Made by a program: the position numbers and the translations under genes. A stretch of 37,610 bases of DNA, taken from Macrostomum lignano (Eukaryota). Of the stretch, positions 709 through 22,372 are shown in pieces; position 1 is the first letter of the stretch; every line of letters starts with the position of its first letter. Below the pieces are notes generated by a model, which saw only the letters and a list, made by a program, of their open reading frames with translations, had not been told where the DNA came from and made no database searches. The stretch lies in contig NIVC01003447.1 of NCBI GenBank assembly GCA_002269645.1, forward strand, positions 1 through 37,610, in the 5' to 3' direction.

Positions 709-3700
709 CACGCAGATCAGGCCAGCCCAGCCGGTAGTAAGATAGTAGCTATCCACGCCGGGCCTCAGCTGGCACCTGGGCGCGCATTTCTCGGCCAGTT
801 TGCAGACCAGCTCGGCAAGCCAGTGCTGAGATCCGCACTGCATTTGCTCCAACAGCACCGGCTGTTGTGAGCTGTGCACAGCCAGGTTCAGCTTCACTGG
901 CTTGTCCAGAGTCCACTTATTGAATGACAGACAGGCCACGGTGTACACGCCGGGATCCAGCACGGCTGACAGCATAATGAAGTTGCGCACATATCGCTGG
1001 GTCTGGTGGATAATCCGGCCGGGTCTCAGGTCATTGTCGCCCTGACAGACAACCAGACAGAGGTCGCCAAGCACGATGGAATCGCTGTACCGGTTACACG
1101 GCTGCGGGCATGCGGCGCGTGCGATTGAGTGGTGGAGACGGAATGGAATCTAATGGAAAACATTTTATCTAGATAGATATATAATTGTATATGGATAGAT
1201 CTATAATTTCATCTAGATAGATCTATAATTGCATCCAGACAGATCTAATTTGAATCTAGATGGATCTAATTTGAATCTAGATAGATCTATAATTGTCTCT
1301 ATATGGATCTAATTTGAATCCAGACAGATCTAATTTGAATCTAGATGGATCTAATTTGAATCTAGATAGATCTATAATTGTCTCTATATGGATCTAATTT
1401 GAATCCAGACAGATCTAATTTGCATCTAGATAGATCTAATTCGCATCTAAATAGATCTAATTCGCATCTAGATAGATCTAATTTGCATCTAGATAGATCT
1501 AATTAGAATCTAGATACATCTAAGTTGCATCTAGACAGATCTAATTAGAATCTAGATACATCTAAGTTGCATCTATATAGATCTAATTTGCATCTAGATA
1601 GATCTAATTTGCATCTAGATAGATCTAATTTGCATCTAGATAGATCTAATTTGCATCTAGATAGATCTAATTCGCATCTAGATAGATCTAATTTGCATCT
1701 AGATAGATCTAATTCGCATCTAGATAGATCTAATTTGCATCTAGATAGATCTAATTCGCATCTAGATAGATCTAATTTGCATCTAGATAGATCTAATTAG
1801 AATCTAGATACATCTAAGTTGCATCTAGATAGATCTAATTTGCATCGCACAATCAGTGCAAGCAGCAGCACCCACCTGGTACAGCACCAGATCCAGAGCA
1901 GTCCGCTCCAGCACAGTCATAGCGAACACCTCCAGTGGCTCCTTCGGTTTCAGCAGGCAGGACAGTCGAACTTCGTGAACCTCTGACTCGTTCAGCGGGC
2001 AGTGCGCAATGTCTACCGAGTCGAAATAGGCCAACAGATCATCAAATCCGATCCAGAACAGGCCGCTATCCTGTTGATGGTCGCCGCTGCTCAGCACATC
2101 CGTGAGCTCCTGCCGGTACTGAGGCTCCAGCTCTGCCCAGCTGGCACGGTGGCCCGGGCTGAACCGGCCGCGCCATTCGCCACGGCCCCACGGGTTGCGG
2201 AGCAGCAGCAGCTGGTGGGGCCGGCAGACCGCACCTGTTGGGAGGGTAAGACGCACATCTTAAGGCTAATCCTTATCACAAGGCACATTAGTGAATAAAA
2301 GCGTCCACTAGGAAATCTCAAAGGTATTTAAAGAGTAAAAGTGCACAATGGGGAATAAGAAGTAAAAAAGTGCACAGTGGGGAATCCCAAGAGTAAAAGT
2401 GCACAGTGGGGAATCCTAAGAGTAAAAGTGCACACTGCGGAATCCTAAGAGTAAAAGTTCAGTGGGGAATCCCATGAGTAGAAGTGCACACTGGGGAATC
2501 CCAAGTGTAAATGTGCACATTGGGAATTCTCAAGAGTAAAAGTGCACAGTGGGGAATCCCAAGAGTAAAAGTGCTCAGTGGGGAATCCCAAGAGTAAAAG
2601 TGCACACTGGGGAATCACAAGAGTAAAAGTTCAGTGGGGAATCCCGAGAGTAAAAGTGCATACTGTGGAATCCCGAGAGTAAAAGTGCATACTGGGGAAT
2701 CCCGAGAGTAAAAGTGCATACTGGGGAATCCCGAGAGTAAAAGTGCATACACGAACCTGCAGCACGGAGTAGGCATGCCTCGGATACAATCCCAGGGCTT
2801 GATAAGCTTCATCTGGCAGAGTCATCCGACCGGCGCCGCAACTCGCGCCAATGAGGCAGCCGCGCTCGGCGCCGCTGAGCAGTTTGGCCCAGATCAGCTC
2901 GCGCTCCTCCTGGTTGGACTGCACGGCGTCAGACTGCAGCTCGTAGGACTCGCAGGGGGCGCCAGTGAGAATTGCCAGGCCTTCCAGGCTGCGGCCGGAG
3001 GTCAGGGCGGCGTAGGAGCCGAACTCCTTCGCCAGGGCCTGGGGGTTAGCGAGATATAGGGGAATATTTTGGAATCTCCTTGAATTTTGGGATCAACAGG
3101 AAAGAATTCCTAGATTAAGATGCTTAGAATTTAAAACGAGATTGGCAAGACATTTTGGAAACAATAGGAATTTAGGGAATCAAAGTCGGAATCAGAGTTG
3201 GAATTGGGAATCAGAGAATGGGTATTGGATATCACAGAATGAGTATTTGGGGATCACAGAATGGGTATTTGGGGATCACAGAATGGGTAGTTGGGGATCA
3301 CAGAATGGGTATTTGGGGATCACAGAATGGGTAGTTGGGGATCACAGAATGGGTAGTTGGGGATCACAGAATGGGTATTTGGGGATCACAGAATGGGTAT
3401 TTGGGGATCACAGAATGGGTATTTGGGGATCACAGAATGGGTATTTGGGGATCACAGAATGGGTATTTGGGGATCACAGAATGGGTATTTGGGGATCACA
3501 GAATGGGTATTTGGGGATCACAGAATGGGTAGTATAAAATCGCAATCACAAGTGCCAATTAATTACCTTTTCCACCAAGGCCACCCAGAGCTGCGCGCCT
3601 CTGCAATGCGAGTACACCAAAGTGCGGGTGTCTGCCCGGCAGGGGAAGAAGCCATCAATGTACACAGTTTTCCAGAGCCCGGCAACGCACAGCTGTACAG

Positions 3701-5747
3701 CGTACACGCCCTCTGGATTTACCTAGCAGAATGCAAATTTAAATGAAATTTCAGCATCCTGTTTTTGCCAGTGATTATATTTGATATTGCACGAAAAGGA
3801 TGTGTCTTATCTTATTTAACTGTTTTGCGTGTGCTAAGATACCAAGACAATATTCATAACTTCATACCACAGCAATAATAATGTAGCTATAAGTAAACTT
3901 TTAATCTTTACAGATTTCAATTCGCTTTCATCCATCTCTTTTATTCTCAATAGATTCTCTTTAATGTACCTCTCTCCCCAAACCCACTTATCTCCCCAAA
4001 CCTGCTTCTCTCCAAACCTACTTCTCTCCCCAAACCTACTTCTCTCCCCAAACCTACTTCTCTCCCCAAACCTACTTCTCTCCCCAAACCTACTTCTCTC
4101 CCTGAACCTACTTCTCTCCCCAAACCTACTTCTCTCCCCAAACCTACTTCTCTCCCCAAACCTGCTTCTCTCCAAACCTACTTCTCTCCCCAAACCTACT
4201 TCTCTCCCTAAACCTACTTCTCTTTCCAAACCTACTTCTCTCCCCAAACCTACTTCTCTCCCCAAACCTGCTTCTCTCCAAACCTGCTTCTCTCCAAACC
4301 TACTTCTCTCCCCAAACCTACTTCTCTCCCCAAACCTACTTCTCTCCCTGAACCTACTTCTCTTTCCAAACCTACTTCTCTCCCCAAACCTACTTCTCTC
4401 CCCAAACCTACTTCTCTCCCCAAACCTACTTCTCTTCCCGAACCTACTTCTCTTTCTAAACCTACTTCTCTCATCAACCTACATGTCCGCTGAAATCTGC
4501 CTCCAAAACCTAGCCTCACAACCTTTTTAACCCCTAACATTGACTACCTCTTCTACCCCGATCTCGCCCCCTCCCTGAACCCAGTCGCAAACCTCTCTAG
4601 TCAGGAGGATCCTCCTCAGCATGGAGCGCCTCTCGGCCACCACAGCCAGAGCGGACAGCAGCCAGCAGTCGCCCAGATACCCCTGCCTGATGTCTGCAGC
4701 GGACGCCGTCGCTCGTTCGTCAACAACGATCCAACCGGTCCCGTGAGTGACCGGGCCCGCCTCCGGTCTGTCCGCCTCTTGACTCATCGCCGCTCCGTTG
4801 GTCCTGCCGGTGAAGAAGTTCATCATCTCGTCGACTAAGTTGAGCTTAGCTGGCGAGCGGAGCTGGGGGAACTGGCAGGGCTGGGAGCGCCAGGCTGGCA
4901 GATCCTCGTGCTGTATCTCCTCCAGGCGGCACCAGCGAATGCCGCAAGGCAACTGCCTGCGGGCGGTTGTGTGCGATGACTGGGGAGTTAATGAGGGCGG
5001 CCCAGCAACTGAGGATCTGGGAGGCTGGCCTAGCAACTGAGGATCTGGGAGGCTGGCCCAGCAACTGAGGATCTGGGAGGCTGGCCCAGCAACTGAGGAT
5101 GTGGGAGGCTGACCCAGCTACTGAGGATCTGGGAGGCTGGTGGCCCAGCAACTGGGGATCTGGGAGGCTGACCCAGCAACTGGGGTTCTGGAAGGCTGCC
5201 CCAGCAAATGAGGATCTGGGAGGCTGGCCCAGCAACTTAGGATCTGGGTGGCCCAGCAACTGAGGATCTGGGTGGCCCAGCAACTGAGGATCTGGGTGGC
5301 CCAGCAACTGAGGATCTGGGTGGCCCAGCAACTGAGGATCTGGGAGGCTGGCCCAGCAACTGAGGACCTGGCTGGATCGCAGGCCACGCAGTCAGGAGAC
5401 CTACCCGCCATCCGGCTGGTCCTCCTCCGCAACCCTCCGCCGATGCCGACCGCCCAGTCCGTACAGCGCCCTGTCGCCAGGCGGGAACTCATCGTCAACA
5501 AAGACCTCACCGGCGCTGCGACAAAGAGCGCGCAATTCATCGACGCGTTCCCTGGCGCGCAGCTCCGCTTCACGCTGCACATCGGCCGAGGCGAGGCTGG
5601 CCTGCCGGCCGGGATGAGCGACAGCCGATGTTGCTGAGCCGAGGACTTGGGAGCATCACAGGCGGAGCAGACGGCATTTTCAGTCTGGTTGATGAGGGTG
5701 CATGCCGGGCAGGTCCAGGCAGAGGCTTTAGTCTTTGTTGATTCAGA
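709..5747 (-). CDS. CAPN15: Calpain-15 / small optic lobes (SOL) family cysteine protease, multi-exon, 3' end beyond the window's left edge
   Basis: Minus-strand exons read by hand: ~5747-5405 (RanBP2 zinc finger [21 protein letters not shown], then VFVDDEFPP), ~4956-4593 ([18 protein letters not shown], catalytic Cys), 3722-3567 ([23 protein letters not shown]...LWVALVEK), 3038-2757 ([15 protein letters not shown]...HAYSVL, catalytic His), 2234-1876 (LLRNPWG, catalytic Asn; GLFWIGFDD), 1149-709 (SOL-homology C-terminal domain). All junctions are GT-AG. Two 1-nt deletions (~5640, ~2218) must be repaired. The 5405/4956 junction and the start codon are uncertain. Confidence 0.93.
1165..1845. 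repeat. 21-bp minisatellite (ATCTAGATAGATCTAATTTGC) filling a calpain intron
   Basis: Tandem units visible directly. They explain the HLDRSNL ORF at 1567-1800. Confidence 0.95.
2330..2750. repeat. ~29-30-bp minisatellite (GAGTAAAAGTGCACACTGGGGAATCCCAA) in a calpain intron
   Basis: Tandem units between the exons ending at 2757 and starting at 2234. Confidence 0.93.
3200..3532. repeat. 22-bp minisatellite (GAATGGGTATTTGGGGATCACA) in a calpain intron
   Basis: Tandem units visible directly. They account for the repetitive ORFs at 3142-3746. Confidence 0.95.
3968..4470. repeat. 18-bp minisatellite (AAACCTACTTCTCTCCCC) in a calpain intron
   Basis: Tandem units giving spurious SPNLLL and GREVGL ORFs. 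Confidence 0.95.
5000..5368. repeat. 28/24-bp minisatellite (CCAGCAACTGAGGATCTGGGAGGCTGGC) in a calpain intron
   Basis: Long 28-bp units and shorter 24-bp units are seen in tandem. Confidence 0.93.
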
Positions 5748-5894: not shown

Positions 5895-6460
5895 TGGGGA
5901 AGAAATTTTGAGATGTCAAGTCTTGGGGGAATTGCTGAGATGTCAATTCTTGTGGGAATTGCTGATATGTCAATTCTGGGGGGAATTGCTGAGATGTCAA
6001 TTCTTGAGGGGAATTGCTGAGATGTCAAGTCTGGGGGGAATTTCTGAGATTTCAATTCTTGAGGGGAATTGCTGAGATGTCAAGTCTGGGGGAATTTCTG
6101 AGATTTCAATTCTTGAGGGGAATGGCTGAGATGTCAATTCTTGAGGGGAATTACTGAGATGTCAATTCCCTCTTATACTCTCTCAGTCTCTCCTTCTCTT
6201 GTCTCCTTTCTTCTCTCTCCACTCTCCTCTCTCCTCCTTTATCTGTTATCTCTCATTTCTAATCACTCCTTACACCTCTTTCATCTCTAAAACCTTATCT
6301 CTTCTCTCTTCCCTTTACTCTCTTATCTCTCTTTTCACCTCTTTCCTCTCTCCTGTCTCTTCTCTCCTCTCATCTGCAGCTCTCTGCTCTCTTATCTCTA
6401 CTCTCTTCTCTCTCTTCTCTACTTTCTCCTCTCTACTTGCTCTTCTCTACTGTCTCTACT
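5895..6460. repeat. ~26-27-bp minisatellite (GGGGAATTGCTGAGATGTCAATTCT, ~5895-6168) followed by a CT-rich low-complexity tract (~6170-6460)
   Basis: Read directly from the sequence, upstream of the calpain zinc-finger exon acceptor at 5748. Confidence 0.9.
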
Positions 6461-10455: not shown

Positions 10456-13400
10456 ATGACAAGGAGACTGCTTGTCACTGCTGCAGTGCTTGCTGTTTTG
10501 CTAAACCTGTGCTCCGCTGGTGTGCCTCCCATTGGACCGCTTCAAAAAGCTGTAAGTGCCTCTTCCACTACTGCTGCGAAAGGCAAAATGTCCGGCAGCA
10601 CGGGAAAAAAGGCTACCGGCTCATCCGGCGGGTCAGACCCTAGCAAGTACCAGGGGGCTTTCGACACGATAGGCTCTGCCATCAGCAGTTCGAATGATCG
10701 AACAAAGCAACTGCTCGGCGGGCTCATGGACGCAGTGAAGAATGACCCTGGCCAACTCATCACGAGGAATATGCTTGACAAGCTGGCGCAGCAGAATTCT
10801 TTTCTGCCTCAGAAAGCGGGAACCCGTTCCGTCAGTTTGCAGTCCGAACAAGGATTCAATGGATTCTCGAACTATCAGCCATCCGGATGGGTCATGACCG
10901 AGACTATGAGCGGACCTGCTGAAAAAATGCCACAAACAACGGACGAAAGTGTTCCTGTCTACACCTATCCGCAAGGACTTGGTCCTGTGTTAATCAACGG
11001 TTGCACAGCAAATAGCTACTCTGAAACCAGCCCCTGCTTTTCCAGCAAACACCTCGGCAGAGGTAAGGGAATCTGTCCAAATCTCATGGACGCAGCTGCC
11101 TACGTGGGTGTGGGATTCGACGGCCGAGGCTATTACAAAATCGAGAGCCGGAGAGCCAGTTTGGTACAGCGAGCGTGCTTCAATATGGCCAGCTTCTTAG
11201 GCAAGGATGTTCCCGACACGATGAACGTGTTCGGAATCTTCGAGACCACAGCTGAAACAAGGTCTTTTCAGTCAGCCGATGAGTATCTTCGCTTCATCAG
11301 AGAGAAGGCTGGTTTATCTGAACAAAGGAATCTTTTCCTAAGTGAGGCTACTAAACATTCCAAGTCTAGCGGGTTCGGCATGAACCTCGGTGCGATCGGA
11401 TCCATTGCTGGGGGTGCGATTGGGGCTGCCGTCGGAGGTCCTGCGGGTGCCCAGGTGGGAGCTTCTCTCGGAAGCGCTGTTGGAGGAGGCATCGAGGGAG
11501 GAACGGCGAGCGGCTCCGGAAGTTCCTCATCCACAAACAAAGGTACGTCTAGATCTAGTGTGACTCAAACCGATAAGTCAAATGGTCAACAGAGTGCTTC
11601 TAACAACTTCTTTGCCATTATGTACGTCAATATCATCCTGTTCGAGATCACACTAGACGAGGTGAAGCCCAAAGACATAAACCTTGCAGCCTTGAAAGAC
11701 TACATGAGCCTGCCAGAGTCTTACTTTTCAATCGGAGCTGATGTGAGTTACCAGAATTTCCTGCTTCGTTGGGGAACGCACTTCATTCGATCTGGAAAAT
11801 TCGGTGGGCAATTAAAGATTACAAAGACCGCTAAGACAGACAAGCTCAAGTCGGCCCAGGAGTTTGCTAGCATCGCAGAGACCGAGTTTCAGTCGATGTT
11901 CTCAACGCTGCAGTCGAAATATTCTCAAGAGAGCAGCAGCTGGAATGTTTTAGGATTTGGTGGAGAAAAGAATTCTGCGTCGCAGAATTCGAATGGAAAA
12001 TCTACGTCTCAGTACAGGAGCACTTTGGATCAACGGAGAAAGCTATCCCAAAGCTTCCGTCAATCAGAGTTTACGCATACCACCGTTGAGGCTCAAGGAG
12101 GAACGCCTGAGATCGCCGAAGCTCTTGTGGACTTCTACACTCCCGCATTTAGACAACTGTACAACAGGTGGATCGACTCCATCAAGGACTACGTGAAACC
12201 GTTCGAGTTCCAGTTGAAGTCTATCGACCAACTATTTAACATGAACATGGATGACCTGTTTCCATCCGGAAATCTTGACTTTGGGTGCATGGGAGGAGCT
12301 GGCGGTAAAGTAAAATTTCTAGTGGAACCTGGAACAAAGCGTCGCTATTATTTAGACGTGGAAACGTCATTTGAAAACAATAAAACAACTACCACTATGG
12401 TAAAAACATACTGCAAGTACAATAGTCTTAAAGAGTTCAAAATTGATTTGGTTAGGCGTAGAATTTCATTAGAGAAGGCAGTGGCGGTGTACATGGCGGA
12501 GGGACCATTTCCTACTTCATCATTTGAATTGAATGCTGGACAACCTGGATGCGACCAAGAGACTCTGGCTGAGCTGAACCTTTTCAGTAAGGGGACTAGA
12601 CCTTTGAAATTCGCCGAATTAAGCAAGGCTCCCTTTTTAATAGCCTTTGATTTGCCAGCGGATATTCCTAACATGCTCAAATCGAGTGCCAAGTATGTCA
12701 TGCTTCATCGAGCCGACCGATGGTTTGCCACGGAGCCAGGACAAATGCACATACATCTGTATGATGGCTGTCAGCTGGTGGGTTACAAGCCTGCGGAGAC
12801 GAAGATCTGCTTTAAGAACATCATTCTCACCTACGAGGAATCTTCAGGCTTCTTTCATATCGATCCTAAAGACTTTGCTGCATCGAAGCGTCGCAACCCG
12901 ATCCTTCCAGACTGGCTCCGAGGCTCAACTGTAGCGAGGGCTTCAAAGATAGACTTATCAAACGGCACCTTTGCGAACTCAGCTTCCGTGCCATGCAATG
13001 TGAAGTGGATGAATTCGCACAGACTCGATCCAGGAAAAGATGAAAACTGCATTCACTTCACGGCAGCGAGTTCAGGTGACATTTTCGTTAACTTTGCATC
13101 CATTCCCAAAGATCACACTACTTGGTACTACCTGCAGATCAACATGGATGGCGTCGCATTCTATAAGGCGATGCATCTGCAGAAACGAGACTACAAGAAG
13201 GGAATGGGAACGCTTGGAGACAGGAACCTCTATCAGTCCTATTTTGTGTGCGTGAACCAGGCCGATGGCGAGGTGCTGATGCAGTTCGGCAAGGCTGATT
13301 CAAACAGCGACGTCGGCACCGTCTACTCTGGTTACAAATTCGCTCAGGACAGTCAGTACAGCCGATTGACTTTTTACTCATTCGGCTCCGGCTCCAAGTC

Positions 13401-13644
13401 CGTGTCATTGATGGACATCCGACTCACGAGACAGATGCCAAAAGTGGAATGCCTAAATAACGACTACATTTTGAAGAACGGTCATTGCGTTCTCAACTGC
13501 CATAAAGAGTGCATCGACTGCAATCTGGCTAAAGACGACAAGTCTTGCTTTAAGTGCCGAAATGTGCGGATTGAAATAGCAGGCACTGGAAGTAAACTGA
13601 GTAACAAAGTAATTCAGTGCTTGCCAGAGTGTCCGAAAGGCTAC
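10456..13644 (+). CDS. Secreted MACPF/perforin-like protein, N-terminal part (signal peptide, MACPF domain, beta-rich domain, start of furin-like Cys repeat)
   Basis: Hydrophobic leader MTRRLLVTAAVLAVLLNLCSAG. MACPF signature YQNFLLRWGTHFIRSGKFGG at 11749-11808. Ser/Gly/Thr-rich TMH segments flank it, then VEAQGG and WIDSIKDYVKPFEFQLKSI. C-terminal CHKECIDC...C..C...CLPECPKGY is a furin-like repeat. Continues into the next frame through a 1-nt deletion at ~13645. Confidence 0.9.
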
Positions 13645-15282
13645 GACTGAGTAACAAGGATAAGAAGCTGTGCCAACCTTGCAGTCCTGGTAAATTCAAG
13701 GATTCAGTTGGTAATCAAAAGTGCAACACCTGTTTTCCCGGAAGCTTTAGCGCGTCGGGTGCTTCAAATTGCAGCATATGCAGTCCAGGAACATTCAGCG
13801 CAAAGCCGGGATCCGCAGAGTGTGAGAAGTGTCCCGCAGGATCCGCGGCCAAGTCAAAGGGATCAAGAACGTGCAGTAAATGCAGTGCAGGAACATTTTC
13901 TAAAATTGGACAGGTGGAATGCACGCCATGTCCAGTTGGTCATTTTATTGGAAAAACAGGTCAATCCAAGTGTCAGTTGTGCCAGGCAGGTTTTTATGCT
14001 GCGAATCAGGGCATGCAAGCCTGCACAAAGTGTCCTGCCGGAACATCGAGCACCGAGGGTTCAGTGAGTTGCGATAACAACTGCAAGAGAGGCGAGTTCA
14101 GTCCGAAAAAGGGAGTCGCATGCAAGAAGTGTCAGGCAGGAACATTCACTCCAAGCTCAGGATCGAGCAGCTGCACACGTTGCCCGACAGGCTCCTTCCA
14201 GGCGCAGGAGGGTCAGGGGTCGTGCAGAACGGCCCCAGCAGGATCGTACGCTGCAGGTCCGGGTGCCAAACGCAGCACACCATGTCCAGCGGGGACCTAT
14301 AACCCCAAGACAGGAAAGTCCAGCTCATCAAGTTGTGTGCCATGCTCTGCAGGAAGCTATTCAAAGTCGGCTGGCTCTACTGTCTGCACCCGTTGTCCCA
14401 AAGGCAGTTACCAACCGCTGAAGAACCAGAAGGAGTGTAAGAGCGCCAGTCCTGGACGGTTTGTCGAATTAGAAGGTCAGTCGGTGCAGAAGTTGTGTCC
14501 ACCTGGAAAAATCTCAGGCGCCGCGGCCTCTACGTGCACACCATGCAGTGCCGGTAGTTTTGCAAACCAAATTGGCTCGACCTCATGCAGCCGCTGTTCC
14601 GCCGGGAGCTGGAGCGCCGCTGGTGCGAGCTTTTGCAAGCCATGCAACGCTGGAACGATTTCGGGAGCCGGCGCGACGACCTGCACTCAGTGTACTGCTG
14701 GTCGCTTTGCCGATAAAGCGGGCTCGAGCGTTTGCAAAGACTGCGCTCCTGGAACCTGGAGTAGCGCTGGAGCTACCAGCTGCATTAACTGCCCACTTGG
14801 CACTTACTCGGCCGCGAAAGCTTCTGTCTGCACGCGGTGTCCTCCCGGAAAGTACGCCGATGCTCCCAAGTCAGTAACCTGCAAACCGTGCCGTGCAGGC
14901 AGCGTTAGTAAAACTTCAGGCTCGAGGGCGTGCACGTTTTGTCCGGCGGGCTATATGTCCTCTGCAGGTGCGACCAGCTGCAGTGCGTGTCCTGTCGGTC
15001 ATTACTCTAAAATTGGTTCGTCGAAGTGCACTCCTTGTGCAGCCGGAAAGTACGTGAACAAAAAGGGCGCAGCGAGCTGTGCTCAATGCCTTGCGGGTCA
15101 GTACTCAAATGCAGGCAGCGCCCACTGCACGGCATGCCCACCGGGAAAATACTCAAATACTGTCGGATCCAGCACTTGTAAGCAGTGCGATCTAAACTTT
15201 GCTTTGGCGGTTCATTCTGGTAGGGTTAACTGCGACCTCTGTCCAAATCTACGGGCCACACGCGATGCAAGAAGCTGCCTCA
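13645..15282 (+). CDS. Same gene, middle part: ~30 tandem 16-17-aa Cys-rich units (CxxCxxG[F/Y/W]), Ephrin_rec_like/GCC2-GCC3/TNFR-like stalk
   Basis: About 30-32 CxxCxxG units counted by eye in ORF 13617-15290. The ORF has no proper start of its own and completes the furin-like motif (CPKGY-RLSNKDKKLCQPC). It ends at a canonical donor A|GTGAGT (15283). Confidence 0.88.
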
Positions 15283-15984
15283 GTGAGTAATAAATTAATG
15301 AACTGATTCTATATTTTCCTGAGTACATATATCATTATCCAGTTAGCTGAATGGGCTGTATTCTGGATGCAGTAACCCCGTGCAGCTAAGCCAGTTATGT
15401 CTGTTTTAAAGTCACAAACAATTATTTCCTGAACACCGCTATCATTTCCATTCTTATCTACTAAATATATGAGTCATCGAAAGGTCTAATATTGGTATAG
15501 TTTGTTTAAATTCAGAGCTGTTGTACTCGCACGAGTGTGTTCAGGGATTCGTGTTCTAAAGTTATAGCGTCTCTGTGTTGGCAACCTAAAATTCCCTGTT
15601 TAATTCGTAAGCAAAGAGATTTGGCTAAACCGTTTTGTATATAGCATTATCGCATTCAATAAGGAGTCCTGAATTCTTTTTAATGAATAACGTCGTGTTT
15701 AAAAAATTTTTTGCTTTATTAAAATTTAATGTGGTACAAATAATAGTGAAGTAGTTTATAAAACTCGGGTACCCTAACGAACTTTTTATTTATATAAATC
15801 CATTGAAAAATTAAACCACAAGGTAACAGTTGAATTCGCAAAATTCAAACTAAGAATTAGTGACAGAATCGTGCAAAATCATCTTTTACGGATCAGTCAT
15901 CCGCCGGTTTTGATTTTGATTTCTTTTGGTAGAAAGTTGATTCCTATGTAACTGATGCCGACTGATGCCTTTTTTACGCTTTAG

Positions 15985-16343: not shown

Positions 16344-17091
16344 GTTGCCATCGGAGCATCCTCGGAGGCTGGGGACAGTTTTAACAAATTTCCTTTGATT
16401 TTTTTTTCTTCCAAGTTCAAACGGTTGGGAATTTTGGCGATGGTTTGCTGTTTTTCGTAACTGACGTATAAATATTCCCGTGGATGGGTCTTAAAACTTC
16501 TAGCTTTTTTGTTAGTTTGGGTTAATGGTAATTTTGGTTATTTTTTTCCTACGATATATTATTCCATTTTAAAACCTATTAAATGCTTGAGATTGCAGTT
16601 TTTTTTCAATTTTTATTTAAATCCCTATTTTACGCTGATAGCTATCAGATAACATAAGATACTCAATTCCTAAGATAATATCTGCAGCTATAAATTTGAA
16701 TTTAAAGTAAAAATATCAACACATAGAGCCAAAAGTCATATAGTCACGGACGACTTTATAGATTGAAGTCTTAATTGAGGGCTGAAATCAGTAGAGCTAG
16801 TTAACACCTAAAAAGTTAAGGACCAATGTGCTTAGCTTTTTCGCTTCAGTATGACATACATGTAGCATAAAATATAACGGAACTGGAGCTTATGAAGGCT
16901 TTACTAATTTCCTCTTATAAAACTGTATTCCGCGTTTTGCATTAGCACTTTTTTAGCTCAACACGATCGCCTGATCAATTTAACAGTAATGGTACGAACG
17001 AGAGCCTGTGAAAGTGACTGACTTAAAATCTAGTATTTTTCGACGATATCAAATTTCAAGCTTGCGAAGGTATGAAGCTAGTCTAGCCAAT

Positions 17092-17349
17092 ATCACTGCT
17101 GAAAGAATATAATGGATTGCTAATCTAACCAACATCAGTGCTATAATAATATAATGGATTGCTAATCAAACCAAATCACTGCTAAAATAATATAATGGAT
17201 TGCTAATCTAACCAAATCACTGCTGAAAGAATATAATGGATTGCTAATCTAACCAACATCAGTGCTATAATAATATAATGGATTGCTAATCAAACCAAAT
17301 CACTGCTAAAATAATATAATGGATTGCTAATCTAACCAACATCACTGCT
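17092..17349. repeat. ~41-42-bp tandem repeat, six units arranged as a duplicated trimer
   Basis: Units ATCAC/GTGCT-N5-ATATAATGGATTGCTAATC[T/A]AACCAA. The variants gaaag, ataat, aaaat recur in the same order twice. Confidence 0.92.
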
Positions 17350-18056
17350 GGAGTAATACTAAAGGGCACACATGCACCAATAAAAGGTGAGTCACTGTGT
17401 TGGGAGGGATGATCAGAGTAACTGTACCCATGATTATAGTTCTGCAGTGCAAAGGCTACTCAAGGACTACTAAAGTAGACGTTACTATCTATGTTACTAT
17501 CTATGTTACTTTAGTCGTCCTTGAAGCTACTCTGGCTGGCACAGACAAAACTTGGATAATAAAATGCTTCCTTTGATATGCCAACTGATATGCAGGATGG
17601 AGTTGTATAATTGTACTGCAAAGTAGAGAAAGCGGGCTGTCCAGACTCAGTTCGCACACTGTCATTCAATTTGTGTGCCCAAAAACGGCCTGGTACGAGC
17701 GGTTAGCGCTCATTTAATGAAATGAAATTGGGGACGGAAATTATTCTAATACAATCCTTGTCATTTTTTCAACTTCGTTACTGTGATGAGCTGGCTTTCA
17801 CAGCCAAGACCCTCTCACCCCATATACTTAGTGAGTCAAAAATGCCTTCCGTACAAAATTTCTCTCAACCTACTACACTGCAGTTGACAATGAAAAGAGA
17901 GAGCATAGGCTATTGCACACTGTTTTGCTACAGTCTTGTACGCTCGTAGAAGAAAATGACATCATGAAGTGCATAAAAAGCATTTTTATGCTACCTGCTC
18001 TCAAAAAATTCAGTTAGCTTTTTTAGAAGAAAAATTACTTGGACCAACCAACTGCC

Positions 18057-20483
18057 ATGGAGCCAGAATTAAGAGCTGCACTAGAGGCAAAAGACGATGA
18101 AAAACTGCAGCAACTCTGCCCGCTTATCGACTCCAATATGGAGTTGACGGTCGGTGGCTACAAGTATTTCTTCAACGAAGAGCGAACTCAGCCCGTGACG
18201 CATCACGTCGTCTGCAAGACGCGAAGTTCGCAGTGCCTGAAACTTCTGATTGACAAGTTCGGACCCGAGTTCGTGACCTGCAGAAACGACAGGGATGAGA
18301 CCGTTGTGCATCTTATAGCTCAGCATCAGGACGACTCCTGGATGGAACTGATTCCAGAACCTATTGTCCAGCAAAGCCTTAAAGTGACAGCATGGAAGGG
18401 CAGAACAGTGACTCACTATGCTGCTATGAACGATGTAAGCGACTCAGTATTAAAACTACTTGTAGACAAGTGCGGAGTCGACTGTCTCAAAAGCTTGGAC
18501 AATGACGGCAACACGGCCCTCCATCTTGCTGCGCAGTATCAGGGTAGCGATTCGATGAAGCTAGCTAAAACAGTACTGGGTACTGACTGCTTCCAAAGTA
18601 GAGGTTTCTCGAATCGGACTGTGATTCACTATGCAGCTTCCAACACCAGTAGTCACACTTCACTAAAATGGCTTGTCGTACTGTGCGGAACCGACTGTCT
18701 TAAAGCTTCTGATAAAGACGGATACACTGCCGTCCATCTCGCTGCACAGTACCAGGGCATTAAGTCAATGGAGCTGATGAAGGACGCGCTTGGAACTGCC
18801 TGTTTCTATCCAAGCAAAAGCTCCCAAGAGAAAACGGTGTTTCATTGTGCAGCTTCAAACAGATCCAGCAATGCATCATTGAAAGTGGCTTGTTCAAGAA
18901 TTCGGATCTGACTGTCTAACCAAATTTTCCGACAAATTCGGAAACATGCCCCTCCATTTTGTTGCAGAGTGGCAGGGTGCAGATTCGATGGAGCTGATGA
19001 AGAAGGAGCTTGGAAGCAGCTGTTTTCAACTCCAAGGCAAGTCACATAAAACATCGATACACTATGCCGCTGCTAACCGAGAAAGCAACGAATCGCTAAA
19101 ATGGCTTCTCAATGAGTACGGACCCGAAAGTCTCAAAGTTCCGGACAAAGATGGAAACACGGCGGTCCATCTTGCTGCCCAAAATCAGGGCGTCGACTCA
19201 ATGGAACTGATGAAGACAAAGCTCGGAGACGCCTGTTTCGAAATAAAAGGCAAACTACGCTGGACTCCTGTTCACTTTGCAGCTACCAACCTTAGTAGCA
19301 ATGCGTCACTAAAGTGGCTCGTCAAAGAATTGGGATCAGACTGTCTTGAATTGCCTGACAAGGACGGAAACACTGCCATACATCTCGCAGCTCGGTACCA
19401 GGGCATCGATTCGATGAAACTGATGAAGGAAGCGCTCGGAAAGGACTGCTTTCTGTTGAAAGGCTGCTTGAACAGAACTGCAATTCACTGTGCAGCTACC
19501 AATGAAAGCAGCAACCAATCGCTAAAGTGGCTCGTAAGAGAATGCGGAGCTGAAAGTCTCACAGTTCCCGATCAAAATGGACACACGGCTGTCCATCTTG
19601 CCTCACAGTATCAAGGCACAGACTCCATAGAACTGATAAAGCAAGAGCTCGGTACGGAGTGCTTTTTACTAGAAGAAAGTTTGTTTGCTAGAACGCCAGT
19701 TCATTGTGCTGCTTTAAACAGAGTCAGTAACGCATCCTTAAAATGGCTAGTCAAAGAGTTCGGATGTGGGTGTCTTAAAACTCCCGATAAAGACGGAGAC
19801 ACGCCTATCCATCTTGCCACACAGTGTCAAAGCATTGATTCACTGGAACTGATGAAAATAGAGCTCGGAATCAACTGTTTTCAGCTGAAAGGCTACTCAA
19901 ATAGAATGCCAATTCATATTGCCGCTTCAAGCAGCGAGAAATTAGCATTGTTTAATTGGCTGATAAAAGAGTGTGGACCCGATTGTCTGAAGGTTCCTGA
20001 GAAAAACGGAAACACGGCTGTGCATCTTGCAGCTCAGTATCAGGGCATCGAGTCGATGAAACTGATAAAGAAAGAGCTAGGAACTGGTTGCTTCCATTTG
20101 AAGGGCAGATTGATGCGGACCCCCGTTCATTGCGCCGCTTGTAACAAATTTGGCTACTCAGTGCTCAAGTGGCTTGTCCTGAAGTGCGGTCCCGACTGTG
20201 TGGCTGCTGTCGACAAAGACGGAAACACGATCGTTCATCTCGCTGCAGAGCACCAGTCAGCTGACTTGTTGCAGTTTCTAATTGATCAAATTGGACCTCA
20301 AGTACTCTCTCTGAAGAACAACAAAGGAGAAACACTAGTAGAATGTGTGGAGAAGGACTCGGATAATGATCGTAAAGCAAGAAAGCGAAACTGGATCGAA
20401 CTTACAAAGGATTTTGAGTCTTTTTATCTCGAGGAGGGAGCTGTTTCTGTGAATGCAGAAGCTACGGATGATTTGTTAAACCA
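18057..20483 (+). CDS. Ankyrin-repeat/kinase gene, exon 1: ~20 ankyrin repeats in alternating A/B pairs of ~71 aa
   Basis: ORFs 18039-18911 and 18946-20487 join by removing one base at 18882-18885 (TTG AAA G TGG gives SLKWLVQEFGSDC). Repeated DKDGNTAVHLAAQ and RTPVHCAA motifs. Ends at donor CA|GTAAGT (20484). Confidence 0.9.
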
Positions 20484-20836
20484 GTAAGTTTCAGGCTCTT
20501 TACAATTTGAGTTGCGGTTTAAATTACCTGCTGCGTATGTAGCTCGTACTGAAGTATTTTAATTTGATGTTTAAGAAAAGCTTTAAAAATGTCTGTGACT
20601 GTGAAGAGCTTGTACTCGTAATTATATAATTCCAATGCTCCAACGAATATAGCCTACCCTATAAAATATAAAAACCATAATTTTTAATGAATGCAATGAA
20701 TGGTAAAAGTCAAGGGATGAAGCAATTTAATTTGATGCTTATCTGCTAATAGCTTATTTTTGTAGTTATCTGTAAAAAATGTGTGTACCAAAGTGTTGCA
20801 ATATAAAGTATACAAACAAACTGATTCAATTTTCAG

Positions 20837-22078
20837 ACTGCGTACAGCTTTGGAAGCCCGTGACGATGCGCTTCTGCGGCGACTCTGCCTGCTTCTTAAC
20901 TCTAACGTTGAACTAACGGTCAATGATTGTCTCAACAAGGAACGAACTCAGTCTGTGACTCATCACGTCGTCTGTAAGTCGCGAAGTTTGCAGTGCCTGA
21001 AGCTTCTGATATCCAAATTCGGACCCGACTGTCTGTTAAACAGAAACAATCGAGGTGAAACCGCGGTGCATTTGACTGCTATGCACCAGGAAAACCTGTG
21101 GATGAAACTAATTCTAGAAGCTCTTGGCCGTGACTGCTTCAAGGACACAGCATCTAACGGTCGAATGGTGACTCACTATGCTGCTACGAATGAGACAAGT
21201 AACTCATCGCTAAAGTGGCTTGTTGCCGAGTTTGGACGCGACTGTCTCTTAGTACCCGATAAAGAAGGAAGCACAGTCGTTCATCTTGCCGCAGAGTATC
21301 AAGGTGTCGACTCCATGGAACTGATGAACAGAGAGCTCGAAACCGACTGCTTCAAAGAGTTAAAAGGATCCCAGAATCGAACGGTAGTTCACTATGCCGC
21401 CGGAAACAATATTAGCGATGCACCGCTTCGTTGGCTGGTGAAAAAGTTTGGACCAAGCTGTATCAAATTTCCAGATAAACATGGTGTCACGCCTATCCAT
21501 CTAGTTACATTAAACTCCAGAAGCACGAGTAGTATGACGCTTAATTGGCTAGTTTCTGTCGGCGGCCCGGACTGTCTCACTATTCCTGACAATGAGGGAA
21601 ACACACCTGTCCATCTCGCTGCAGAGTTTCACAACATCGAATCCATGAAATTCATAAAGAAAATACTCGGACCAGAATGCTTTAGAAGAATTGGTTTTTG
21701 GCAAAGAACACCCATTCACTGCGCTGCCGCAAACAGTAACTGCAGTGCCCTGCTTGGATGGCTCATAAAAGAATGCGGACACGACTGTCTGATGTGTCAG
21801 GACAAAGACGGAAACACGCCTGTCCATCGCGCTGCATGCTTTCAGCCAGTTAAATCATTGAAGTTGCTGGCTGACCAAATCGGGCCCGAAATTTTCTCGC
21901 TTAAGAACGCTTCTGGAAAAACAATAGCCGATTTTGTAAACCAGGACTTAGATGAAGACCGAAAACTACAAAAGCAGAGTTGGATCTCGAGCCAACTGAC
22001 GCCAGAGAGACAACTAAACCTGAGGCATCCGGAAGTCAGAATGACGGCATCGGTAGAATCCTTGGGTGGCTCAAGTGG
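20837..22078 (+). CDS. Ankyrin-repeat/kinase gene, exon 2: ~9 ankyrin repeats, paralogous to exon 1
   Basis: Acceptor AATTTTCAG| at 20836 is phase 2 and in frame with exon 1 (LLN-Q-LRTALEARDD). The N-terminal cap matches exon 1 (LRAALEAKDD...ERTQPVTHHVVCK). Ends at donor GG|GTAAGC (22079). Confidence 0.88.
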
Positions 22079-22372
22079 GTAAGCAACTGCAGCATATTTG
22101 TAGCATATTAGAAATCTATTACCGATCATCTTTGGGGAGCAGCTCGCGGTAAACGTGTCTGAGTCTTGGGGTTGTCCAACAATTCATTCCCATATAGTCC
22201 GACCCCTTTGAGGCACAGAGAGTGTACGTGCCTGACCATTCGAGATGGTACATCCTGTGTGATGTTTGTTATGTTTTGTTATGACTTGCATGTACTGCAT
22301 CCTGTGACTAGCCATCAAGTTCCCCACTGCATTTAAAACTGTGTCCATTCATTTCACTCTGGAAACAAGCAG

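Follow-up and report, generated by a model that had tools for sequence, protein, structure and literature searches.

A conserved glycine-zipper segment at the predicted tip of the first transmembrane hairpin of a Macrostomum lignano MACPF protein

The MACPF/CDC superfamily is the textbook case of helices that refold into β-hairpins, and established MACPF pores use β-hairpins. An earlier idea that the membrane attack complex (MAC) crosses membranes by amphipathic helices has been abandoned (PMC5483522). A gene in a 37,610-nucleotide stretch of Macrostomum lignano DNA (assembly GCA_002269645.1, contig NIVC01003447.1, positions 1 to 37,610; hereafter the window) raises the question of whether the tip of such a hairpin could nevertheless be helical: it encodes a MACPF protein (the query protein) that contains a glycine zipper in its first transmembrane hairpin region (TMH1). 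The models and alignments described below support a position of the zipper at the TMH1 tip, and its sequence pattern leads us to favour a helix, tentatively.

The zipper consists of two arms around a central turn:

Positions 11389..11490, forward strand (residues 312-345): glycine-zipper insert GAIGSIAGGAIGAAVGGPAGAQVGASLGSAVGGG, from the translation.
Positions 11386..11436, forward strand (residues 311-327): zipper arm 1, LGAIGSIAGGAIGAAVG, with G319 and G323 invariant and G315 and G327 at least 90% conserved.
Positions 11434..11442, forward strand: turn G327-G328-P329, which falls exactly on the TMH1 midpoint and reads GGA in members of the sister clade.
Positions 11443..11493, forward strand (residues 330-346): zipper arm 2, AGAQVGASLGSAVGGGI, with G339 and G343 invariant and G335 at least 90% conserved.

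Eight glycines (residues 315, 319, 323, 327, 331, 335, 339 and 343) form an unbroken i+4 chain around the GGP centre, and the large aliphatic residues are likewise spaced every four positions, at G-1. When these 44 residues were shuffled 200,000 times, a chain this long arose only 319 times. The transmembrane glycine zipper was reportedly defined at the sequence level by Kim et al. in 2005 as GxxxGxxxG and its variants with G, A or S. The criterion used here was the presence of at least three small residues, centred on glycine, at positions i, i+4 and i+8 of a hydrophobic segment, and it was found that each arm contains a conserved G-x3-G-x3-G core (319/323/327 and 335/339/343). Tandem Repeats Finder detected no DNA-level tandem repeat beneath the zipper in positions 11300-11650, and the periodicity is held at the protein level with varied codons. 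Therefore, the zipper is not a recent slippage product, and a recent microsatellite-type expansion was ruled out as its origin. The possibility of an excised antimicrobial peptide was also considered, and was rejected because the segment is without flanking dibasic or other processing sites.

The identity of the protein that carries the zipper was established by profile, signature and fold. Positions 10456-13650 of the forward strand form a single uninterrupted open reading frame (ORF) of 1064 amino acids in frame 1, and the sole domain found in a Pfam scan of this protein was MACPF (PF01823), at residues 383-597, with a score of 50.9 bits (E=3e-13) relative to a gathering cutoff of 21.5 bits. 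The MACPF signature (Y/W)-G-(T/S)-H-(F/Y)-x6-G-G is present as WGTHFIRSGKFGG, in which W439, G440, T441, H442, G450 and G451 are invariant in 21 relatives. Two AlphaFold2 (AF2) models were made, one of the full-length protein from a 21-sequence alignment (mean predicted local distance difference test, pLDDT, of 56) and one of the MACPF domain only from a 74-sequence alignment (core pLDDT 85-93, predicted TM-score 0.60), and the strand topology is identical in both. The domain model contains the bent four-stranded sheet of the MACPF fold, with helical clusters between β1 and β2 and between β3 and β4; in the MACPF/CDC topology, the two helical clusters beside the bent sheet are TMH1 and TMH2 (PMC5483522, PMC13134498). 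All of the matches listed in a Foldseek search with the domain model were MACPFs, with a probability of 1.0 and a TM-score of about 0.5 (a third of the chain is disordered), and they include GNIP1Aa, Mpf2Ba1, Plu-MACPF, perforin, C9, MPEG1, C6 and C8. The elements of the fold are as follows:

Positions 10456..13650, forward strand, frame 1: ORF of the secreted MACPF protein, in which residues 1-23 are a signal-peptide-like hydrophobic N terminus.
Positions 11221..11268, forward strand (residues 256-271): core strand β1 (AF2), with a pLDDT of 85-91 in the domain model.
Positions 11269..11601, forward strand (residues 272-382, 111 amino acids): TMH1 or CH1 region (AF2), with base helices 274-285 and 292-305 and a low-confidence centre.
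Positions 11602..11655, forward strand (residues 383-400): core strand β2 (AF2), where the Pfam MACPF match begins.
Positions 11770..11808, forward strand (residues 439-451): MACPF signature, W-G-T-H-F-x6-G-G, overlapping the start of strand β3.
Residues 442-461, forward strand: core strand β3 (AF2).
Positions 11839..12075, forward strand (residues 462-540, 79 amino acids): TMH2 or CH2 region (AF2).
Positions 11932..11976, forward strand (residues 493-507): TMH2 tip SSSWNVLGFGGEKNS, at the TMH2 midpoint (residue 501, within WNVLGFGG).
Positions 12076..12096, forward strand (residues 541-547): core strand β4 (AF2).

The midpoint of TMH1, residue 327, coincides with the turn G327-G328-P329, and a family profile aligns the TMH1 of this family with that of C8α (...SFGVTIGIGPAGSPLLVGVGVS...). 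The models and the profile together support a placement of the zipper at the tip of the TMH1 hairpin, midway between β1 and β2. The arms of both hairpin regions are very polar and Ser-rich, and hydrophobicity is confined to the tips. The original prediction, made from the sequence alone, had read residues 312-345 and their flanks from nucleotides 11389-11490, taken the protein for a MACPF, located the segment at the TMH1 turn and marked a second membrane-inserting region at about 11930-11975. These points agree with the translation, with the Pfam score and top Foldseek matches, with residue 327 and the C8α alignment, and with the position of the TMH2 tip, respectively. An AlphaFold monomer model had been proposed as a check; its topology puts the zipper at the TMH1 tip, but the zipper itself was modelled at a pLDDT of only 25-35.

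Whether the zipper represents additional length was evaluated by measuring TMH1 and TMH2 between conserved core anchors in 98 relatives, with the following results:

Cnidarian type: TMH1/TMH2 36/43 amino acids, about 32 sequences.
Amphioxus and Lingula: TMH1/TMH2 75/75 amino acids, about 29 sequences.
Others: TMH1/TMH2 76-80/79-87 amino acids, a few sequences.
Zipper-less Macrostomum paralogue P0001: TMH1/TMH2 77/79 amino acids, one sequence.
Zipper bearers: TMH1/TMH2 108/79 amino acids, seven sequences.
Zipper bearer P0192: TMH1/TMH2 100/79 amino acids, one sequence.

Most of the relatives fall into classes of roughly matched TMH1 and TMH2 lengths, and a minority have other pairs, of which at least one (P0212, 106/75) is a gene-model artefact. 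The zipper bearers are the sole recurrent exception to matched lengths, and subtraction of the zipper restores the match (77 versus 79). Therefore, the zipper amounts to about 30 residues of extra length, and the term insert, as used originally, is justified by length comparison both with TMH2 and with zipper-less relatives. The discrete matched classes (36/43, 75/75 and 77-80/79-87) suggest that the barrels come in two or three distinct heights. Most members of the short class are cnidarian and some are from amphioxus and hemichordates, whereas the long class includes amphioxus, Lingula, Owenia and the flatworm group.

The closest proteins to the query are uncharacterised M. lignano MACPF paralogues (60-70% identical), and no identical database protein was present among the proteins retrieved. 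Remoter relatives, 25-40% identical, come from amphioxus (Branchiostoma), Lingula, Owenia, a hemichordate, a rotifer and many cnidarians, including corals. All 239 retrieved proteins were scanned for the zipper by regular expression and alignment, and it was found in about 15 sequences that belong to two sister clades. The bearers of the Macrostomum group are the query protein, P0002, P0003 and P0004, and those of the second, marine group, from ENA/MERC assemblies, are P0006, P0057, P0191-P0195, P0049, P0119 and P0045. The sister-clade sequences are on contigs of 1-5 kb, with a single long ORF on L001 (ENA ERZ27293408 contig k119_1133587). In a neighbour-joining tree of the core only (both hairpin regions left out, no bootstrap values), the two bearer groups are sisters, and the zipper-less paralogue P0001, which is 64% identical to the query protein and has about 31 fewer residues at the zipper site, nests beside it. 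On these sequences, the simplest history would be one gain of the zipper followed by one loss, in P0001. Zipper-less relatives have a short Gly-rich hydrophobic tip at the same site (GGAFGLGW in amphioxus, GSAFGFYAG in corals). Expansion in place seems likelier than acquisition from elsewhere. Acquisition of a bacterial glycine-zipper domain is unlikely, given that all scores shown for such domains are below threshold and that the zipper-less relatives are already Gly-rich at the tip. The original prediction had asked whether close homologues carry the insert as a known feature; three of the four close paralogues that cover TMH1 carry it, as does the sister clade, but no description of it was found in the literature searched.

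Because the paralogues are about 60% identical and synonymous sites would saturate, constraint was measured as position-specific identity relative to a within-segment composition shuffle. The two clades share about 37% identity overall, but in the zipper their identity is 57.9%, as opposed to 20.2% expected (z=22.7). This is the highest inter-clade identity among the TMH1 and TMH2 segments measured, which include the TMH1 N-arm (31%), the Ser-rich TMH1 C-arm (24.1%, with 15.8% expected) and TMH2 (34%). The zipper alignment is gapless in 13 of the 14 bearers, and the single indel is of 8 residues, exactly two tetrads. G308, G319, G323, G328, G339, A341 and G343 are invariant, and G312, G315, G327 and G335 are at least 90% conserved. 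Charges inside the zipper of homologues occur as Lys at 325 and Glu or Asp at 333, each four residues from P329, which is therefore marked as the turn. At the tip of TMH2, the motif [WFY]x[FVIL][LF]G[FLI]G is kept in zipper bearers, with an inter-clade identity of 46.8% relative to 13.7% expected, and differs in the zipper-less P0001 and in amphioxus; judged from these sequences, it may co-vary with the zipper.

This conservation bears on an explanation in which the zipper works in the soluble monomer or prepore, as a latch on the core sheet, as an oligomerisation handle or as a tolerated flexible spacer. A precedent for a latch that delays unfurling is provided by TMH1 of C9, reported as a steric block on polymerisation, or 'brake' (Spicer et al. 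2018, cited in PMC13134498). Paralogue P0001 lost the insert and yet has an intact MACPF core, and AF2 gives no confident structure over residues 304-380, both of which speak for such a role. However, the zipper is the most conserved segment of TMH1 and TMH2, which argues against a floppy low-complexity spacer: such a spacer would not hold its exact length and 58% identity between 37%-identical clades when the Ser-rich C-arm drifted to 24%. Furthermore, about 36 nearly uncharged residues with 8 large aliphatic residues would need burial in a soluble protein, and a partner surface is not evident. We consider a function restricted to the soluble states to be distinctly unlikely.

The central question is whether the zipper enters the membrane as helix or as strand. 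In each of the 14 bearers, the Gly indicator was found to have its peak at 90 degrees per residue, whereas in the β-structured TMH1 of C8α the peak is at 165-170 degrees. The most frequent weak Pfam matches among 13 bearers were to Gly-zipper_Omp (10 bearers), Gly-zipper_YMGG (9), Glycine zipper 2TM domain (8) and Gly-zipper_OmpA (6), with best E-values from 2.5e-4 to 0.018, and the query segment covers these profiles almost end to end. Six zipper-less TMH1 controls, including C8α, gave no glycine-zipper match at E<=10. Below threshold, the segment also matched DUF6861 and several small families, among them Romo1, Transgly_assoc and microcin V. A profile of 13 zipper segments found only chance-level matches among sequences of the Protein Data Bank (PDB), namely ARH3 and LolC segments (E at least 0.06), and hence no relative of solved structure. 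The glycine-zipper likeness is a similarity of pattern, not family membership. In this form, the helix-GGP-helix GxxxG pattern noticed originally is upheld by the 90-degree periodicity and by the top weak Pfam matches, which are glycine-zipper families. Two-transmembrane (2TM) glycine-zipper domains have been described as α-helical membrane hairpins, of which SlyB forms oligomeric membrane rings (bioRxiv 10.64898/2025.12.22.696046). Glycine zippers are helical membrane packing motifs without which VacA and Tde1 do not permeabilise membranes (PMC10240207), and GxxxG zippers are present in further toxins (PMC10240207; PMC5380434; PMC12744356; PMC10434224). We tentatively interpret the zipper, from its sequence pattern, as a helical membrane hairpin, and put this interpretation a little short of an even chance.

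The principal alternative is a long β-hairpin, in which the Gly-rich uncharged arms (13-17 residues) would be the membrane-spanning strands, and the remaining TMH1 together with all of TMH2 would form a tall extramembrane collar. The family TMH1 tip aligns with the C8α tip FGVTIGIGPAGSPLLVGVGVS, and the query sequence GGPAGA resembles IGPAGS of C8α. In 3 of the 14 bearers, the hydrophobicity power at 180 degrees is at least that at 90 degrees, and it is high in the query; the charged residues that homologues have close to the turn (Lys, Glu or Asp) are usual for the tips of bilayer-crossing β-hairpins; and MAC components with hairpins of unequal reach are known (PMC13134498, PMC5483522). Weighed against these resemblances, the conserved glycines are spaced by four and not by two in 14 of 14 bearers (C8α is at about 165 degrees), and the Pfam matches include no β-hairpin family. 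The lengths also present a difficulty, in that TMH1 would overshoot TMH2 by about 15 residues per strand (about 45-50 Å), which would put two of the four strands per subunit in the membrane, and isolated two-stranded ribbons would be unable to close a barrel of equal radius. A long β-hairpin is thus possible, though on the unlikely side.

Several observations weigh against the helical interpretation itself. The zipper region (residues 304-380) has a pLDDT of 25-35 in the AF2 models; the deeper domain model draws the zipper as coil (pLDDT 26-33), and the helices drawn at 318-325 and 329-341 in the full-length model have a pLDDT of about 30, which is too low to serve as evidence. In several bearers, the period-4 pattern is accompanied by a strong 180-degree harmonic. 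Read as a β strand, the segment has one face on which I, V or L alternates with small residues and another on which Gly alternates with A, Q or S, possibly a split between lipid and lumen, and C8α demonstrates that a Gly-rich uncharged TMH1 tip can be β (PMC13134498). In some homologues, there are only 13-14 residues per arm between polar positions, a length that suits a transmembrane strand but is on the short side for a transmembrane helix. The best displayed Pfam scores of the query segment are all below the gathering scores: 17.1 relative to 28.9 for PF13441 (YMGG), 17.3 relative to 25 for PF13488 (Gly-zipper_Omp), 13.9 relative to 24.2 for PF05433 (2TM) and 12.6 relative to 27 for PF13436 (OmpA). 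In addition, pore formation by this MACPF family is putative, and the query gene has a frame break downstream, at 13641-13650.

If the zipper is indeed a helical membrane hairpin, the following mechanism can be proposed. On ring assembly, TMH1 and TMH2 would unfurl into a β-barrel to which the zipper would most likely add no height. The zipper would act as a marginally hydrophobic α-helical hairpin, each arm having about 17 residues (about 25 Å), and would project under the barrel rim into the target bilayer. The interface would be occupied by the conserved aromatic tip of TMH2 (WxVLGFG). The Gly faces would pack arm to arm and hairpin to adjoining hairpin. Two helices at a spacing of about 9.6 Å would occupy about 19 Å of circumference per subunit, the same as four strands at 4.8 Å, so that the ring of hairpins could extend the barrel as a helical palisade, as in the SlyB-type ring-forming glycine-zipper lipoproteins. 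A pore that combines a β-barrel with a helical hairpin had been suggested in the original prediction, and it is an inference here as well. The complete arrangement, a hybrid pore in which the MACPF β-barrel collar is continued in the bilayer by a ring of glycine-zipper helical hairpins, each subunit contributing two helices in place of four strands, is a further step that we regard as unlikely. If true, the MACPF/CDC superfamily would have its first α-helical transmembrane segment, one that evolved in place out of a Gly-rich β-hairpin tip.

The hydrophobicity of the segment is relevant to where and when a helical hairpin could insert. The zipper has about 36 residues, is nearly uncharged and contains 8 large aliphatic residues; the mean hydropathy of its arms in the query is about 1.2, under the usual threshold of 1.6, and the summed position-independent insertion energies of the arms are estimated at +3.2 and +7.2 kcal/mol. 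Only residues 1-23 of the query protein score as a membrane segment, a Kyte-Doolittle value of 1.6 being reached nowhere else, and no C-terminal membrane anchor was found in the query gene, frame-3 continuation included, or in its paralogues. Therefore, the hairpin should escape integration at the endoplasmic reticulum (ER). The low hydrophobicity would allow passage through the ER as a soluble protein, with insertion that is cooperative and occurs only after oligomerisation. Cooperative-only membrane partitioning is typical of pore-forming toxins. The same values bear on the idea that the hairpin is a resident 2TM anchor in the membrane of the producing cell, the protein then being membrane-bound and not secreted. 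Apart from the signal peptide, no stretch other than the zipper is hydrophobic; the zipper resembles the 2TM glycine-zipper lipoprotein domains, and the Kyte-Doolittle value just reaches 1.61 in P0002. However, the query mean falls short of 1.6, insertion would cost +3 to +7 kcal/mol per arm by this estimate, and the MACPF fold would be divided across the membrane by a 2TM anchor placed midway along TMH1. A resident anchor is improbable.

The reading frame of the query gene was evaluated in relation to its paralogues, and the features downstream of the MACPF domain are as follows:

Positions 12253..13485, forward strand (residues about 600-1010): conserved family-specific C-terminal region containing a galectin/LamG-like jelly roll (alignment, AF2 and Foldseek).
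Positions 13641..13650, forward strand: frame break, at which paralogue homology moves from frame 1 to frame 3 without a gap.
Positions 13617..15290, forward strand: frame-3 continuation, with 14 Ephrin_rec_like cysteine-rich repeats, NCD3G and TNFR-like modules.

Frame 1 terminates as CPKGYD* at 13650, with a one-base shift relative to every Macrostomum paralogue, and frame 3 carries on (...LSNKDKKLCQPCSPGKF...) for 557 open codons that match the paralogues. The break could be an assembly indel or a real truncating mutation, and it looks like an assembly indel; the MACPF part is unaffected. That the query copy is a decaying pseudogene in which the zipper is meaningless is suggested by this break, which is found relative to all paralogues. 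The 1064-codon ORF, however, is intact through the signal peptide, the MACPF domain and the jelly roll, the matching open codons past the break are the pattern of a single-base assembly error, and the zipper is kept in about 14 other sequences, many of them on short, single-ORF, transcript-like contigs. Decay is highly improbable. The gene product is a secreted MACPF protein in which the MACPF domain is preceded by a signal peptide and followed by a lectin-like jelly roll and by Ephrin-receptor-like Cys repeats.

Within residues 1-187 (positions 10456-11016), the N-terminal approximately 165 residues past the signal peptide are of low complexity and, a single long helix at 63-90 excepted, have a very low AF2 pLDDT (about 24-31); conservation of this part outside Macrostomum is poor. 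The jelly roll itself occupies about positions 12950-13450 (residues about 830-1000), with Foldseek matches to GRIFIN, the adenovirus fibre galectin domain, the neurexin LNS domain and laminin, and a role of the modelled galectin/LamG-like domain in target binding is plausible. Elsewhere on the forward strand, positions 18039-22955 contain ankyrin-repeat ORFs (18039-18911, 18946-20487 and 20781-22082) followed by a protein-kinase domain fragment (22341-22955), which are probably one gene divided by introns or frame breaks. The window is dense in minisatellites, with array periods of 15-172 nucleotides and up to 67 copies. The arrays in its first part are at 9-638, 1167-1846, 2331-2747, 3204-3531, 3967-4472, 4999-5375 and 5909-6456, and those in its second part are at 17077-17350, 23786-24477, 24928-25989, 26430-27017, 30739-31426, 31686-33298 and 35315-35671. 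The long 'ORFs' at 3964-4530, 23735-24534, 24759-26003, 31624-33264 and 35121-35774 are minisatellite arrays only, and the strong GC/AT skew at 30-34 kb is due to such arrays.

The literature searched yielded no report that combines MACPF with 'glycine zipper' or 'GxxxG'. The one report found on MACPF proteins with a glycine-rich TMH1 concerns C8α and CD59, and of the two found for Macrostomum and MACPF, PMC6626399 is irrelevant and the other appears to be a survey of MPEG1 evolution. The Macrostomum homologues bear automatic names only ('hypothetical', 'MACPF domain-containing'). With respect to the literature searched, it is therefore new for a MACPF protein to have a glycine-zipper module of helical type at the tip of TMH1. 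The zipper clade offers a natural experiment on how a pore engages lipid, in that its TMH1 tip has gained a conserved motif that is otherwise characteristic of membrane hairpins of helical type and of toxins that form helical channels. The close zipper-less paralogue P0001 serves as an internal control, and zipper-less relatives are available in three length classes. Should the zipper prove helical in the membrane, the α and β pore-forming principles would be combinable in one protomer, and engineered pores could be anchored or tuned with a compact module. If it is a β-hairpin, the unusually long and asymmetric TMH1/TMH2 pair would challenge current barrel models.

Among the closest known systems, the M. 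lignano paralogues P0003 (BOX15_Mlig022132g2) and P0004 (UniRef A0A1I8J970) and the Logan transcript P0002 are 60-61% identical to the query protein over about 1000 residues, and they share the MACPF domain, the jelly roll and the Ephrin_rec_like repeats, as well as a 108-residue TMH1 with a gapless zipper and a 79-residue TMH2. With C8α, C9 and perforin (PDB 2qqh, 6cxo and 3nsj), the query protein shares the W/Y-G-T/S-H-F/Y-x6-GG signature, the TMH1 and TMH2 clusters and a fold that Foldseek matched with a probability of 1.0, although the identity to solved MACPFs is only 10-14% and TMH1 of the query exceeds TMH2 by 29 residues. Like the tip of the query family, with which it aligns, the TMH1 tip of C8α is rich in Gly and carries no charge; in contrast to the two-residue β periodicity of the C8α tip, the query tip has about 30 extra residues with a strict four-residue Gly periodicity.

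The bacterial PF05433, PF13488 and PF13441 domains (SlyB, YfgH, OsmB) resemble the query module in their two GxxxG arms, short Gly turn and length of about 40 residues. As all scores shown are under the Pfam gathering thresholds, no homology is claimed. The bacterial domains follow a lipobox in outer-membrane proteins, whereas the query module lies inside a eukaryotic MACPF hairpin, where it probably originated from a Gly-rich tip (GGxFGxGW in amphioxus), the host being a metazoan secreted MACPF and not a bacterial lipoprotein or outer-membrane protein. The N terminus of VacA, the type VI secretion system proteins Tde1 and Tse4, the type VII secretion system proteins TelE and EsxX, and CdzC/CdzD likewise are secreted, toxin-like proteins with tandem GxxxG motifs in a segment of marginal hydrophobicity. 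Homology to these toxins is not evident, and the zipper is their only membrane-active element, whereas in the query protein it is grafted onto a β-pore-forming scaffold.

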